The notes below the pieces were generated by a model. That model saw only the letters and a program-made list of their open reading frames with translations, was not told the DNA's origin and ran no database searches. A program made the position numbers and the translations under genes. Below, piece after piece: positions 2,854-14,741 of a stretch of 64,000 bases of DNA. Location: sequence record NC_048046.1. One strand, 5' to 3'. Numbering within the stretch: position 1 is the stretch's first letter; every line of letters starts with the position of its first letter.

Positions 2854-2939
2854 ACGGGAATTCCAGAGCGGTCAAATGGGCTGGTCTCCAAAACCAGCGG
2901 CGCAAGCCTTCGGGGGTTCGAATCCCTCTTCCCGTGCCA
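2854..2939 (+). tRNA. tRNA-Trp(CCA) with a long variable arm
   Basis: Acceptor acgggaa/ttcccgt, G73-CCA, anticodon arm ctggt-ctCCAaa-accag, T-loop ttcgaat. Confidence 0.85.
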
Positions 2940-5690: not shown

Positions 5691-6386
5691 TTATTCCGGA
5701 AACTGGTAGACGCGGTCCTTCCAGAAGGGCATCCCCTTCACCTCGACCATGCCCAGGCTCTCGACGAACTTGGAAGCTTCGTTGACCTCGGCGCCGTGCA
5801 TCAGCGCTTCGTTGCCACGCTGTTCCATCAGGATCACCGGCCGGCAGTGCAGGATTGTGTCCTTCGCGCCGAACACGACCGGGCCTTCGAAGCCCTCGGT
5901 GTCGATCTTGATGAAGTCGACATCGCCGTAACCGTACGAGTCGATCGTGCGGACTTCGATGGGATCGGTTACGAACGAATCGTCCCACTTGGGAGCTTCG
6001 CCATCCAGGAGCGCGTGCGAGAGTTGCCCGTGGGAGGGCTTGTATTCGAAACGCAGGGCTCCCGGCTCGCGCCCGATTGCGATTAGGTGGGCGACCAAGT
6101 CCGGGTCCTTGTGCGTGTTCAGCACGAGCGCGCCGTGGATTTCCGGAACCGCTTCGAACGCCTCCACTCGTTCGAAGGTGCGCTTCAGCAGCGTTGCCGT
6201 GATCCCGACGTTGGCGCCGACGTCCAGCGCGCGCCGGCGGCGCTTGCAGATCGCGGAAGCTGCCTTCACCTTCTTCACATCCATGTTGGGCAGCCCGTCG
6301 AGGACATCGATCGCCTGGAACCGAGCAGCATCCACGAGAGGGACGTAGAAACCGTGAGCTTTGGCATAAGCGCTGGAATGGGACAA
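5691..6386 (-). CDS. FkbM-family SAM-dependent methyltransferase
   Basis: ALDVGANVG, FIKIDTEGFE, RPVILMEQ motifs. Confidence 0.88.
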   Translation of the reverse strand: MSHSSAYAKAHGFYVPLVDAARFQAIDVLDGLPNMDVKKVKAASAICKRRRRALDVGANVGITATLLKRTFERVEAFEAVPEIHGALVLNTHKDPDLVAHLIAIGREPGALRFEYKPSHGQLSHALLDGEAPKWDDSFVTDPIEVRTIDSYGYGDVDFIKIDTEGFEGPVVFGAKDTILHCRPVILMEQRGNEALMHGAEVNEASKFVESLGMVEVKGMPFWKDRVYQFPE

Positions 6387-7277: not shown

Positions 7278-7350
7278 GCTGTCGCGTGTGGATTCACGCC
7301 GGCCCCTTGGTATGGGGAAGTAGAAGGTTCAATTCCTTCCGGCAGCACCA
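7278..7350 (+). tRNA. tRNA-Thr(GGT), atypical compact D-arm
   Basis: gctgtcg/cggcagc, cccc-ttGGTat-gggg, T-arm gaagg-ttcaatt-ccttc, CCA. Confidence 0.75.
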
Positions 7351-7355
7351 AGTTC

Positions 7356-7425
7356 GCCGATGCTTCAGGGAAGAAGTGTCTTTCGTAGTGACGCCAGGAG
7401 GGTTCGAGTCCTTCCATCGGCACCA
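7356..7425 (+). tRNA. tRNA-Thr(CGT), atypical compact D-arm
   Basis: gccgatg/catcggc, loop ttCGTag, T-arm gaggg-ttcgagt-ccttc, CCA; 70 nt. Confidence 0.7.
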
Positions 7426-7465: not shown

Positions 7466-7546
7466 GGATCGTGAGCTTAATTCCGGGTGGCCGGGACCGT
7501 CCTCTTAAGTCGAGAGCAAGTGGTTCGACTCCACCACGATCCTCCA
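7466..7546 (+). tRNA. Atypical or degenerate tRNA-Lys(CTT)-like
   Basis: ggatcgt/acgatcc acceptor, T-loop ttcgact, CCA; ctCTTaa loop, but anticodon and D stems pair poorly. Confidence 0.5.
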
Positions 7547-7552
7547 AAACAT

Positions 7553-7642
7553 GGGTGAGTTCTCCGAGCGGTCGAAGGGGAGTGACTCTTAATCACTTGG
7601 ACGAAAGTCCCACCGTGGGTTCGAATCCCACCTCACCCTCCA
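7553..7642 (+). tRNA. tRNA-Lys(CTT) with a long variable arm
   Basis: gggtgag/ctcaccc, agtga-ctCTTaa-tcact, variable hairpin ggac-gaaa-gtcc, CCA. Confidence 0.85.
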
Positions 7643-8098: not shown

Positions 8099-8169
8099 GG
8101 GGCCAGCGCTGGGCGCAGCCATCCTTTGCAAGGAAGGCGGGCGGGGTTCGATTCCCCGTGACTCCACCA
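8099..8169 (+). tRNA. Atypical tRNA-Ala(TGC), minimal D-arm and extended anticodon stem
   Basis: ggggcca/tgactcc with G3.U70; gcgc-tgg-gcgc D hairpin; gccatcc-ttTGCaa-ggaaggc. Confidence 0.7.
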
Positions 8170-8170
8170 C

Positions 8171-8259
8171 GGATGGTGAATTGATCAGGCGATCAGGGCG
8201 GTTTCGAAAACCGAGCGGACCTTCACGGGTCTGGGGTTCAAGTCCTCCGCCATCCGCCA
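8171..8259 (+). tRNA. tRNA-Ser(CGA), 8/4 fold
   Basis: 8-bp acceptor ggatggtg/cgccatcc, 4-bp T-stem gggg/cctc, ttCGAaa loop, long variable arm, G73. Confidence 0.85.
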
Positions 8260-8263
8260 ACAT

Positions 8264-8353
8264 GGAGAGCGAACCGGACAGCCGCGCCGGGACCGATTGG
8301 AAATCGCGTCGGACCTTCACGGGTCTGGGGATGGTGTCCTCCGCTCTCCGCCA
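8264..8353 (+). tRNA. tRNA-Ser(GGA), 8/4 fold, non-canonical T-loop
   Basis: ggagagcg/cgctctcc, cga-ttGGAaa-tcg, T-loop atggtgt. Confidence 0.8.
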
Positions 8354-9438: not shown

Positions 9439-10110
9439 ATGGACAGAAATTCTGGCGACGTTAAACTGTGCGCCATGTCCTATCCGATCGCTCCGACCTC
9501 ATTCGAGTCCAACCATTTCGATCCGGCGTGGGTCGATTTGGATTTCTTCTATTCTCAGAGTGGGATTGGTAGCTTTCCCAAGCATGTATGTAAGCGGACC
9601 TTCCAGGCTTCGCTGCCCTACATCCAGAGCGCTCGACACGCGATCGACATTGGTTGTCGCGACGGCGAATACAGTCGCTACTTGCAGACGAGCTTCGCGC
9701 ACGTCTTCGGCTTCGATCCGCGCCGGCGCGAGTACCTTCCGTTCAACGTCGATCTCAAGCGCATGACGCATTTCCTCTGCGCTCTGGGCGATGAGCCCGG
9801 TACGATCAAGATGTCGGGCGGTACCCACAAGCAGTTCGGTCCTAAGCAGCATGTCGCGCCGTGCTTCACGCTCGACAGCTTCGGCCTTCAGGATATCGAC
9901 TACATTAAGATCGACGTCGAAGGATTCGAGAAGAAGGTACTGATTGGCGGTTGGGCAACGATTGACCGTTGCCGGCCGGTGATCGTCATCGAGCAGAACG
10001 ATGTCACGCTGCCGGGGGCAGCGCGCTACGAAGCGCGAGACTGGCTGGAGCAGCGAGGCTATAGCGTAGCTGCGATCAGCAAGGATGACCTGATCATGGT
10101 TCCGCAGTGA
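9439..10110 (+). CDS. FkbM-family SAM-dependent methyltransferase (alternative start 9475)
   Basis: AIDIGCRDG, YIKIDVEGFE, RPVIVIEQ motifs. Confidence 0.85.
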   Translation: MDRNSGDVKLCAMSYPIAPTSFESNHFDPAWVDLDFFYSQSGIGSFPKHVCKRTFQASLPYIQSARHAIDIGCRDGEYSRYLQTSFAHVFGFDPRRREYLPFNVDLKRMTHFLCALGDEPGTIKMSGGTHKQFGPKQHVAPCFTLDSFGLQDIDYIKIDVEGFEKKVLIGGWATIDRCRPVIVIEQNDVTLPGAARYEARDWLEQRGYSVAAISKDDLIMVPQ

Positions 10111-10852: not shown

Positions 10853-11614
10853 ATGCGCATCCTGGTCTTGAGCGACCTGCACCTCGAATTCGGCAACATG
10901 GATCGCAACTGGCAGCCGCCCGAGTGCGACGCGGTGATCCTGGCCGGCGACATCGCGACCGGTGTCTTCGGCGTCATGTGGGCACAGACGCTCCCGGCGC
11001 CGGTCTTTTACGTGCCGGGCAACCACGAGTTCTACGGCAAGCGCCGCTACCTCCACCACATGGAGAAGCTGCACGCGAAGGCGGAAGACTCCAATGTCGC
11101 CGTCATGCAGAACCGCATTATCCAGGGCGAGATCGCCGGCGAGAAGGTCCGCATCCTCGGCGCCACGATGTGGACCGACTTTGGCCTGCATGGGACCGAG
11201 CATTTGTCCCAGGTCGCGGCGCAGCGCGAGATGAACGACTACAAGCAGATCAGGCTGGATCACAGCAAGATGCTGACGGCCGACCACACGCGCAGCCTCC
11301 ACCTGGAATCCCGCTACTGGCTCAGCGAGCAGCTTCGACAGCCGTTCGACGGCAAGACGATCGTCATCACCCACCACGCCCCTTCCGAGCAGTCGATTCC
11401 GCAGCGCTATCGCGGCGATCCTCTGTCGCCGGCCTACGCCGCGCGTCTGGAGAACCTGATCTGCAACTACGAGCCTACGCTGTGGGTGCATGGGCATATC
11501 CACGACAGCCTGGACTACCGCATCTGCGAGACGCGTATCGTCTGCAACCCTCGCGGCTACAAGGGCCACGAACTCAACAAGAACTTCAACCCGCATCTGG
11601 TGGTGGAGATTTAA
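10853..11614 (+). CDS. Calcineurin-like metallophosphoesterase
   Basis: SDLH, GD, GNHE, HH, HGHIH motifs. Confidence 0.92.
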   Translation: MRILVLSDLHLEFGNMDRNWQPPECDAVILAGDIATGVFGVMWAQTLPAPVFYVPGNHEFYGKRRYLHHMEKLHAKAEDSNVAVMQNRIIQGEIAGEKVRILGATMWTDFGLHGTEHLSQVAAQREMNDYKQIRLDHSKMLTADHTRSLHLESRYWLSEQLRQPFDGKTIVITHHAPSEQSIPQRYRGDPLSPAYAARLENLICNYEPTLWVHGHIHDSLDYRICETRIVCNPRGYKGHELNKNFNPHLVVEI

Positions 11615-11616
11615 GC

Positions 11617-11952
11617 ATGCCCCGCAAATGGCGCGTATTCGGTGGAGAGGTCTGGCACTTGCATGCGCCCGCACCGGAGCAGCTACCGACGAACAATCAG
11701 TTCGCGAGCATCTTCCGAGATTGCGATAAGGTTGAATTCGCGGGCGATTACGACACCGAGAAGGAAGCGCGGGATGTCTGGAAGGCTCGGGCGCAGCAGA
11801 CCGTCGACAACGCCTTGATGCGCTTCTTCATCGTCCCTTACGATTACGAAGAGATGTCACCGAAGGAGTGGTGGGCTAAACGCGTCGAGTTCCTATCGCA
11901 GAATATGGACGTACCTGCTATCGGCCGCTCGCGTCCGGAGATTATGCGCTAA
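11617..11952 (+). CDS. DUF4170-like protein
   Basis: VFGGE...WKARAQQTVDNALMRFFIV resembles alphaproteobacterial DUF4170. Confidence 0.7.
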   Translation: MPRKWRVFGGEVWHLHAPAPEQLPTNNQFASIFRDCDKVEFAGDYDTEKEARDVWKARAQQTVDNALMRFFIVPYDYEEMSPKEWWAKRVEFLSQNMDVPAIGRSRPEIMR

Positions 11953-12473
11953 TGGCTTACCGCCAGATCATCCCCATCGACGACAAGCTGCTGACCAAGC
12001 CGTCAGCGCCGATCGAACTCATCAACGGCGAGGTTCCGCAGGATATCCTCGATCTCGCTGGCGACATGCTGGAGACCTGCCGCGCTATCAACGGCGCCGG
12101 CCTCGCGGCGGTCCAGGTGGGCGAGCCGGTTCGCATGTTCGTGATGGACCTCGTCCAGATCAACGGCCCGACCATGGTCTTCATCAATCCGGAGATCATC
12201 GTGCGTTCGGGCGAGACGATCGAGATGCTGGAGGGGTGCCTGTCGATGCCGGGCATCGGCTTCACGCTGGAGCGCGCCGCGACTGTCACTGTCCGGTACA
12301 CTGCGATCGACGGCGAAGAGAAGACCTATGACGCCGGCGGATACGCGGCGATCTGCTGCCAGCACGAAATCGACCATCTCGACGGCATTAGGCATATTGA
12401 CCACTTGTCGAAGCTGAAGCGTTCGCGCTACATGTCCAAGTTCAAGAGCATGCTTCAAGCACGCTCTGGTTAA
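11952..12473 (+). CDS. def: Peptide deformylase
   Basis: GAGLAAVQVG, EGCLS, QHEIDHLDG signature motifs. Confidence 0.95.
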   Translation: MAYRQIIPIDDKLLTKPSAPIELINGEVPQDILDLAGDMLETCRAINGAGLAAVQVGEPVRMFVMDLVQINGPTMVFINPEIIVRSGETIEMLEGCLSMPGIGFTLERAATVTVRYTAIDGEEKTYDAGGYAAICCQHEIDHLDGIRHIDHLSKLKRSRYMSKFKSMLQARSG

Positions 12474-13966: not shown

Positions 13967-14052
13967 GGGTAGGCACCGGGCACGAGTGAGCCCAACCGAC
14001 TGTAAATCGGCCGCGAAAGCTGTGAGGGTGCGAATTCCCTCCCTGCCCTCCA
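13967..14052 (+). tRNA. tRNA-Tyr(GTA), atypical T-loop
   Basis: gggtagg/cctgccc, ccga-ctGTAaa-tcgg, variable arm, T-loop tgcgaatt. Confidence 0.75.
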
Positions 14053-14053
14053 T

Positions 14054-14128
14054 CCCTACGTAGCTGAGACAGAGTAGCGCCAGAGTGAAATCCTGGAGAC
14101 GGAGGTGCGAGCACTCTCGTGGGGGCCA
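14054..14128 (+). tRNA. tRNA-Phe(GAA), atypical T-loop
   Basis: ccctacg/cgtgggg, loop gtGAAat, T-loop tgcgagc. Confidence 0.7.
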
Positions 14129-14652: not shown

Positions 14653-14741
14653 TCTCATGTGGCGGAACTGGTAAACGCACCGGACTGTTAATCCGGCGTC
14701 TCGCAAGAGACTTGGGGGTTCGAAGCCCTCCGTGAGAGCCA
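14653..14741 (+). tRNA. tRNA-Asn(GTT) with a long variable arm
   Basis: tctcatg/cgtgaga, ccgga-ctGTTaa-tccgg, variable hairpin gtctc-gcaa-gagac, G73. Confidence 0.88.

Follow-up and report, generated by a model that had tools for sequence, protein, structure and literature searches.

Can a tRNA with a lysine anticodon work on the long-armed class II body that textbooks and recent reviews reserve, in bacterial systems, for tRNAs of Leu, Ser, Tyr, and selenocysteine (Sec) only? The question is posed by a gene of Caulobacter phage CcrPW (NC_048046.1, 308 kb, Dolichocephalovirinae), analyzed here within a window of 64,000 nucleotides that matched bases 62001-126000 of the genome at 100% identity; all coordinates below are those of the window. 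The gene, at 7553-7642 (+), sits within the second of several CcrPW tRNA islands and carries the plain label tRNA-Lys in RefSeq. A first-pass annotation had read it either as a nuclease-resistant Lys tRNA or as a missense tRNA that inserts another amino acid at AAG. The gene proved to encode a seven/five cloverleaf with a real fifth helix and to be a member of a large, diverse, and structurally conserved family found mainly in tRNA arrays of phages, many of them unrelated; on balance, it is probably a genuine, working Lys tRNA for AAG on a class II body, a judgement made jointly with a more speculative step, the evasion of host tRNA nucleases.

Fold and family of the tRNA

ARAGORN called a tRNA-Lys(ctt) of 90 nt at 7553-7642, encoded CCA included, and the Rfam tRNA model (RF00005) gave it 38.6 bits, above the gathering score of 29. 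The acceptor stem is a perfect 7 bp in which GGGUGAG (7553-7559) pairs with CUCACCC (7632-7638), the latter strand being continued by U73 (7639) and the encoded CCA (7640-7642). A 3-nt connector, UUC (7560-7562), leads from the acceptor stem to a D arm of the Ser/Tyr type, UCCG-AGCGGUCGA-AGGG (7563-7579), with A14, G15, G18, and G19, and G26 (7580) follows directly after it. Canonical tRNAs have two connector nucleotides (8 and 9) between these stems, and the single extra one is the deviation of this tRNA from the standard layout. The anticodon arm, AGUGA-CUCUUAA-UCACU (7581-7597, CUU at 7588-7590), keeps U36-A37-A38-U39-C40-A41, and the T arm is GUGGG-UUCGAAU-CCCAC (7615-7631). Between them lies the variable arm, U-GGAC-GAAA-GUCC-CACC (7598-7614), made up of a U, the 4-bp stem GGAC/GUCC, a GAAA tetraloop, and four unpaired nucleotides, CACC; with its 17 nt and 4-bp stem, the tRNA falls in class II, taken as a variable region of at least 10 nt with a base-paired arm. 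The anticodon arm, the 17-nt variable region with its GAAA-capped hairpin, and U73, all listed by the first-pass annotation, are thus present, in agreement with ARAGORN, Rfam, and covariation, and the D arm it had called Ser/Leu/Tyr-like is of the Ser/Tyr type.

The fold was assessed against an alignment of 61 homologs with the CcrPW architecture, drawn from a wider set of class II tRNA-Lys. Across the five helices, 96.6% of alignment cells were standard pairs, compared with 67.8% in shuffles and at most 47% when the registers were slid by 1-3 columns. Compensatory changes were present at 22 of the 25 helix pairs, including all seven of the acceptor stem (99.5% paired), all four of the variable arm (helix 4, 94% paired), and all four of the D stem (helix 2, 90% paired). 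U8, A14, G18, G19, and the T-loop motif UUCRANY, all present in the CcrPW sequence together with 7/5 acceptor/T stems, were invariant across the alignment. The D-stem register, and with it the 3-nt connector, was likewise backed by covariation, and an alternative that lacks position 26, in which a connector of the normal 2 nt leads to a 4-bp D stem, was dropped, the family alignment being against it. In only 12 of the 61 homologs could the third connector base pair with column 30, which directly follows the D stem. An extra connector nucleotide was found in 69 of 167 class II Lys tRNAs, as against 2/90 for Ser, 2/76 for Leu, 0/18 for Thr, and 0/11 for Trp.

The wider set comprised 167 distinct class II tRNA-Lys sequences (CUU or UUU) after de-duplication, most of them from phage tRNA arrays, which formed 84 clusters at 78% identity; the uniqueness implied by the first-pass annotation was therefore mistaken. 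A variable stem of at least 3 bp was present in 95% of the set and in 43% of shuffled arms, with 89 different stem sequences and mostly GNRA loops. Among named relatives, the CcrColossus gene is identical (100%), and a 95%-identical relative shows only five differences, all of which preserve the structure, including a loop change from GAAA to GCAA. phiCbK has two class II Lys genes, CUU (87 nt) and UUU (91 nt), both with U73, and BLAST recovered class II Lys(CUU) with A73 in Ruegeria phage V10 and Rhodobacter phage RcXuper; the class II Lys(CUU) of Xanthomonas jumbo phage XacN1 combines A73 with a three-nucleotide connector. A search pattern written for class II Lys(CUU) hit 116 viral contigs, and ARAGORN confirmed a class II tRNA-Lys at 104 of 109 new viral loci, usually within a dense tRNA array. 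An anticodon-blind pattern of the variable-arm/T-arm junction matched 56 IMG/VR loci, with anticodons for Lys, Met (CAU), Thr, Asn, Cys, Gly, Trp, and Ser. Applied to 596 Gb of genomes from bacteria and archaea, the Lys pattern returned only 60 stretches, of which 35 were real, nearly all in dense tRNA arrays and mostly on contigs of metagenome-assembled genomes. In the cultured alphaproteobacteria Thalassospira xianhensis and Pseudaminobacter soli, class II Lys(CUU)/Lys(UUU) pairs were observed in tRNA arrays on large chromosomal contigs; a PHROG scan of the genes next to the Thalassospira array spoke neither for nor against a prophage.

The conservation of fold bears on whether the gene serves translation at all. 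That it might be a decaying pseudogene, or a tRNA-shaped decoy or regulatory RNA such as a sponge for a host tRNA-Lys nuclease, is suggested by several degenerate tRNA-like genes in the CcrPW arrays, by the unusual three-nucleotide connector, by a minimum free energy (MFE) structure other than the cloverleaf, and by an expression search that gave DNA-like contigs only; the retained nuclease site UAAUC/A could also suit a decoy. Such a role is nevertheless very improbable, as every stem is perfectly paired, the encoded CCA is conserved along with G18, G19, and the T loop, covariation across the 61 homologs is strong, and the five differences in the 95%-identical relative all keep the structure. 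In addition, this is the phage's only tRNA-Lys, and it matches the commonest Lys codon.

Amino acid identity

Like class I tRNA-Lys(CUU/UUU), the CcrPW tRNA has the loop CUCUUAA, A31-U39, G30-C40, the U36-A37 context, the 7/5 layout, and the T loop, and it presumably decodes AAG in the same way; it differs in its variable arm (17 nt, not 5 nt), Ser/Tyr-type D arm, three connector nucleotides, and U73 in place of A73. The Lys anticodon rule is U35 and U36 with C34 or U34 (PMC9976931), and the CUU at 7588-7590 has C34, U35, and U36. Within the family, the anticodon loop is CUCUUAA or CUUUUAA in 166 of 167 sequences, and A31-U39 and G30-C40 are near-invariant. The open reading frames of the window contain 548 AAG and 40 AAA codons (AAG is 93% of the 588 Lys codons and ∼3% of all codons), and the CcrPW arrays hold no other tRNA-Lys. 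Elsewhere, arrays often combine a class II Lys tRNA of one anticodon with a class I Lys tRNA of the other, a pairing that suggests complementary isoacceptors.

The discriminator base is less straightforward. For class II lysyl-tRNA synthetase (LysRS), Lys identity consists of the anticodon and A73, whereas for the one class I LysRS studied U35/U36 dominate and A73 is marginal (PMC9976931). Caulobacter crescentus encodes only LysRS1 (class I), as do most alphaproteobacteria, and beta- and gammaproteobacteria have class II. U73 is accordingly plausible on a Lys tRNA here because the Caulobacter enzyme is of class I, for which the discriminator has little weight. Across the family, A73 is present in 109 and U73 in 53 of the 167 sequences; non-A discriminators occurred in 18 of 20 contigs labelled alphaproteobacterial, compared with 4 of 13 elsewhere (Fisher p = 0.0007, a value that overstates independence as the samples are related), and were also concentrated in high-GC loci. 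The A73 of XacN1, whose host has a class II LysRS, is in line with this pattern. The two classes of LysRS approach the acceptor helix from opposite faces, which would make the extra arm easier for a class I enzyme to accept; since members of the family are also present where the host LysRS is of class II, the arm must be accommodated by either type of enzyme. In the proposed mechanism, the host LysRS would charge the tRNA through U35 and U36, the main Lys identity element, and the class I LysRS of Caulobacter should tolerate both U73 and the extra arm.

Sister class II tRNAs extend this picture to other amino acids. Two lie in the window, a tRNA-Trp(CCA) of 86 nt at 2854-2939 (+) and a tRNA-Asn(GUU) of 89 nt at 14653-14741 (+), both called by ARAGORN. 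The former has a long variable arm (GGC-GCAA-GCC), a Ser/Tyr-type D arm, and A1-U72 with G73, which together are the bacterial Trp identity set; the latter joins a Leu-like D arm to a long variable arm (GUCUC-GCAA-GAGAC), and its G73 is the discriminator of Asn. Among class II array tRNAs, the discriminators were U for Cys (8/8), Gly (3/3, with acceptor start G1-C2-G3), and Thr (16/18), G for Trp (11/11), Asn (19/21), and Ser (74/90), and A for Met (9/9), Ile (8/8), Val (5/5), Leu (76/76), and Tyr (34/34). These bases agree with bacterial identity rules. That the discriminator follows the anticodon on the sister tRNAs favors cognate charging over missense. The identity rules for Lys, Asn, Trp, Tyr, Leu, and Ser were confirmed by an identity review (PMC9976931). 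Class II tRNA-Asn(GUU) with G73 also occurs in Pseudomonas phage phiKZ, where it is annotated tRNA-Asn, and in its relatives, and the gene labelled "tRNA-Pseudo" in Cellulophaga phage phi4:1 encodes a well-formed tRNA-Asn(GUU) of class II. Separately, class II tRNAs with a CAU anticodon were the sole tRNA on the fetched stretch of several viral contigs, and two of them had an initiator-like acceptor end (C1 opposite A72).

The arm itself was compared with those of phage-internal Ser, Leu, and Tyr tRNAs and with the identity review. The CcrPW tRNA shares with bacterial class II tRNAs a helical long variable arm, and its D-arm motif CCGAGCGG resembles that of Ser and Tyr; it differs in its Lys anticodon, in U73 (A in Tyr and Leu, G in Ser), in G15-C48 where Leu has A15-U48, and in a variable stem shorter than that of Ser. 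One parameter that discriminates among class II tRNAs is how many bases of the arm are paired and how many are not (PMC9976931). In the Lys family, a 3-4 bp stem is followed by 3-4 unpaired 3′ nucleotides, a Tyr-like geometry, whereas Ser has 5-6 bp and 1 nt; of the phage tRNA-Ser, 65/90 had a stem of 5-6 bp and 89/90 had at most two unpaired nucleotides. The Leu set (A73, A15-U48) is absent, the CcrPW tRNA having U73, G15, and C48, as is the Tyr set (A73, U35, GUA), of which only U35 is shared, next to U73, C34, and U36. In functional terms, U73 and G15-C48 would take away the determinants A73 and A15-U48 of leucyl-tRNA synthetase (LeuRS), U73, C34, and U36 would take away those of tyrosyl-tRNA synthetase (TyrRS), and the short variable stem with four unpaired bases sets the arm apart from the Ser type.

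These comparisons also speak to the missense half of the first-pass reading, according to which seryl-tRNA synthetase (SerRS), which ignores the anticodon, or less likely TyrRS, would charge the tRNA through its long arm and place Ser or Tyr at AAG. Of the features conserved in bacterial tRNA-Ser (PMC9976931), the long arm, G1-C72, and G2-C71 are indeed present; in place of the Ser discriminator G73 there is U73, which 14 of 90 phage tRNA-Ser share. G73 or U73 with a long arm was treated as SerRS-compatible by Mukai et al. (PMC5389517), allo-tRNAs with non-Ser anticodons insert Ser in E. coli (PMC5389517), and the body has a similarity of 0.82 to a phage tRNA-Ser. Against this stand the arm (4 bp and four unpaired 3′ nucleotides, compared with 5-6 bp and 1 nt in the tRNA-Ser of the same phages), the Lys discriminator A73 in two thirds of the family, the invariant Lys anticodon stem-loop, the anticodon-matched discriminators of the sister tRNAs, and the codon usage, as AAG makes up ∼3% of all codons and 93% of those for Lys, and CcrPW has no other tRNA-Lys in its arrays; for TyrRS, the critical A73 is absent as well. 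Missense decoding is thus unlikely, and of the two readings first proposed it is that of a genuine, if unusual, Lys tRNA that found indirect support, from the canonical Lys anticodon stem-loop, the A73 majority of the family, the anticodon-following discriminators, the pairing with class I Lys tRNAs, and a host with class I LysRS.

The allo-tRNAs and 8/4 tRNA-Ser/His of alphaproteobacterial phages are among the closest known systems, being likewise non-canonical tRNAs with long variable arms and anticodons other than those of Leu, Ser, or Tyr, some of them in alphaproteobacterial phage tRNA clusters (PMC5389517). They differ in having 8/4 or 9/3 branches and Sec-like long D stems and in accepting Ser (or Ala) whatever the anticodon (PMC5389517). 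In place of their 12-bp branch and long D stem with a tetraloop, the CcrPW tRNA has a 7-bp acceptor stem, a 5-bp T stem, and a normal D arm and loop, and among its relatives the identity elements stay in agreement with the anticodon. Nematode nev-tRNAs, reportedly described by Hamashima and colleagues as V-arm tRNAs with Gly or Ile anticodons that are charged with Leu, also join a class II body to the anticodon of a class I family. They are eukaryotic, Leu-charged, and true missense tRNAs, whereas the evidence for the CcrPW tRNA favors cognate charging.

The class II body and defense nucleases

The strongest alternative for why the body is of class II is neutral inheritance: a functional Lys tRNA whose arm has no adaptive role, derived from a Ser/Tyr-type body that was remoulded by anticodon change within phage tRNA arrays, tolerated since LysRS mainly reads the anticodon, and spread horizontally from phage to phage. 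Consistent with this, many anticodons share the same D arm (YCGAGYGG), variable arm (stem-GNRA-stem-CAYC), and T arm (GUGGGUUCGAAUCCCAC), and the sequences most closely related to it outside the Lys tRNAs are phage tRNAs for Ser, Gly, Thr, and Asn. Asn identity, moreover, can be transplanted onto a tRNA-Lys body by the anticodon and G73 (PMC9976931), and in Streptomyces coelicolor one LeuRS reportedly charges tRNA-Leu of types I and II (PMC6614811), a precedent for one synthetase serving both bodies, although there the direction is opposite (a class II family gains a class I member) and the setting cellular rather than viral. Drift of this kind fits less well with an architecture kept across 84 clusters, with Lys members in hosts from Alphaproteobacteria to Xanthomonas and the Asn sister reaching Bacteroidota (Cellulophaga phage), with an isotype skew, present even when the scan was anticodon-blind, to Lys, Asn, Thr, and Met, and with an anticodon-stem conservation that differs between class I and class II Lys tRNAs. 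It is considered possible, short of probable. A specifically Tyr-derived body was dropped, as Ser-type bodies were at least as close, and "Tyr-like" is used here for the variable-arm geometry only. A blastn search of the tRNA against E. coli genomes gave no match.

A role for the unusual body in evading host tRNA nucleases is plausible by analogy with known systems. PARIS AriB cleaves host tRNA-Lys(UUU), Thr(UGU), and Asn(GUU) between C40 and A41; AriB recognizes U36AAUC, a second subunit reads U16-U17 of the D loop, and T5 escapes through U39A, A41C, and U16C (PMC11464382; bioRxiv 10.1101/2025.02.04.636281). A bacterial Schlafen nuclease cuts Lys(UUU) and Met(CAU) within the anticodon stem. 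The isotypes most common on the phage class II body, namely Lys and then Met, Thr, and Asn, overlap these targets. The T5 tRNA-Lys(UUU) that neutralizes PARIS is, like the CcrPW gene, a phage tRNA-Lys with C16 rather than U16 in the D loop, and it substitutes for the host tRNA targeted by the defense nuclease (PMC11464382; bioRxiv 10.1101/2025.02.04.636281); it differs in that its point substitutions, at U39 and A41, lie in a class I body, whereas the CcrPW tRNA keeps U39, C40, and A41 and has another body. Its D loop has C16 and lacks U16-U17, and its variable arm begins three nucleotides past the cleavage site.

The anticodon stems of phage tRNAs were compared in subsets not selected on that stem. 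Class I tRNA-Lys in phage arrays have mostly lost U36AAUC40 (23-40% keep it), whereas the unbiased class II CUU subset keeps it in 10 of 10; for Lys(UUU) in similar arrays, UAAUC was kept in 59% of class II and 23% of class I tRNAs (p = 5e-5, from sequences that are not independent). The pattern fits class I phage tRNAs escaping by stem mutation and class II tRNAs having no need to, and a younger or more constrained family fits equally. A foreign body, with a different D loop and an arm beside the 3′ strand of the anticodon stem, may make a poor nuclease substrate, so that the anticodon stem-loop could stay canonical while nucleases that recognize the whole host tRNA-Lys are evaded; this is the more speculative part of the mechanism. 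As a tentative and rather doubtful generalization, phages may have repeatedly transferred the anticodons that bacterial defense nucleases attack most often (those of Lys, Asn, Thr, and Met) to one common class II body as a "change of shape" counter-defense, which would leave the tRNA chargeable, since the synthetase reads the anticodon and discriminator, and no longer gripped by the nucleases.

Several observations weigh against a working Lys tRNA that evades nucleases. The A73 of the E. coli class II LysRS rule is replaced by U73 at 7639, and the G2.U71 needed by Borrelia LysRS-1, the only LysRS-1 studied, is here G2-C71. The three-nucleotide connector is non-canonical, and the sequence folded by itself has an MFE structure (−35.4 kcal/mol) other than the cloverleaf, which evaluates at −29.9 to −33.0, although a single-sequence result of this kind carries little weight. 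The body is just as similar to some phage tRNA-Ser (0.82) as it is to the other Lys tRNAs of class II. The way in which loci were fetched biases the anticodon statistics, and sequences that are related do not count as independent. The 100% identity with CcrColossus runs into the spacers too and is no sign of selection on the gene, because the flanking spacer is equally conserved. The expression search of sequencing runs and reads gave only DNA-like contigs of relatives, with no transcription or mature-end information; one 151-nt contig, from a wastewater library, was flagged "probably DNA". Finally, the AriB site, U36AAUC with A41, is retained, so that any protection would have to come from the changed body and not from the anticodon stem, and we know of no tRNA-targeting defense in Caulobacter.

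Array context and significance

The islands around the gene hold further tRNA-like elements. Just upstream, at 7466-7546 (+), lies an uncalled tRNA-like gene that combines an acceptor stem of 8 bp with a T stem of 4 bp and carries U73-CCA. Its D arm resembles a hairpin, its CUCUUAA loop is not closed by a proper anticodon stem, and its match to the tRNA-Sec model is weak (16.7 bits); phiCbK has an intact class II Lys(CUU) at this position. Two sub-threshold tRNA-like genes lie at 7278-7351 and 7356-7425 (+), the first being Thr(GGU)-like, its D arm very short (26.9 bits), and the second having a 5-bp stem closing the 9-nt loop UUUCGUAGU (21.4 bits) and stem compensations relative to phiCbK. 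Farther downstream, a Tyr(GUA)-like element at 13967-14052 (+), with U73-CCA, a variable hairpin, and an 8-nt T loop, was called by neither ARAGORN nor Rfam, and the element after it, at 14054-14125 (+), is a Phe(GAA)-like tRNA (30.2 bits) whose T loop is aberrant. According to the phiCbK genome paper, these phages have no tRNA for Tyr or Thr.

Downstream of the Lys gene, a second tRNA-Ala(UGC) at 8099-8169 (+) is only 71 nt long, with the anticodon at position 29, and is conserved in phiCbK; the position of its anticodon suggests a truncated D arm. An 8/4-type tRNA-Ser(CGA) at 8171-8259 (+) is followed by uncalled 8/4 Ser-like genes at 8264-8353 and 8520 to ∼8610 (+), with GGA and GCU in the anticodon loops and the T loop AUGGUGU, which fit the 8/4 tRNA-Ser of alphaproteobacterial phages (Mukai et al., 2017; PMC5389517). 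Protein-coding genes are interleaved with the islands at 5691-6386 (-), 9475-10110 (+), 10853-11614 (+), 11659-11952 (+), and 11952-12473 (+), and the interleaved products include two FkbM-family methyltransferases, a calcineurin-like metallophosphoesterase, a DUF4170 protein, and a peptide deformylase. Pfam searches of the neighboring genes found no synthetase, RNA ligase, or RNA-repair enzyme, and a promoter and terminator scan found nothing beyond chance.

The class II tRNA-Lys family is provisionally regarded as undescribed: a full-text literature search, with most subscription journals outside its coverage, returned no description of class II Lys tRNAs in phages. The phiCbK genome paper merely counts tRNAs, the paper on phage-tRNA evasion leaves variable arms unmentioned, and Mukai et al. 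(PMC5389517) covered 8/4 Ser and His tRNAs in alphaproteobacterial phage clusters and not the class II Lys family. The CcrPW gene and at least 167 distinct relatives place Lys anticodons on a class II body, and related bodies carry those of Asn, Thr, Met, Trp, Cys, and Gly. For annotation, such genes are now labelled tRNA-OTHER or pseudo, as in Cellulophaga phage phi4:1 and CcrColossus; for tRNA identity, LysRS, asparaginyl- and threonyl-tRNA synthetases, and others must accept a fifth helix. Class II phage tRNAs may also serve synthetic biology as natural, orthogonal-looking scaffolds. For the conflict between phage and host, they are natural test substrates for tRNA-body recognition by PARIS, PrrC, and Schlafen-type nucleases. 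Should the change-of-shape proposal be true, it would overturn the textbook restriction of bacterial-type class II tRNAs to Leu, Ser, Tyr, and Sec and would add a second tRNA-based route of immune evasion beside point mutations of the anticodon stem.

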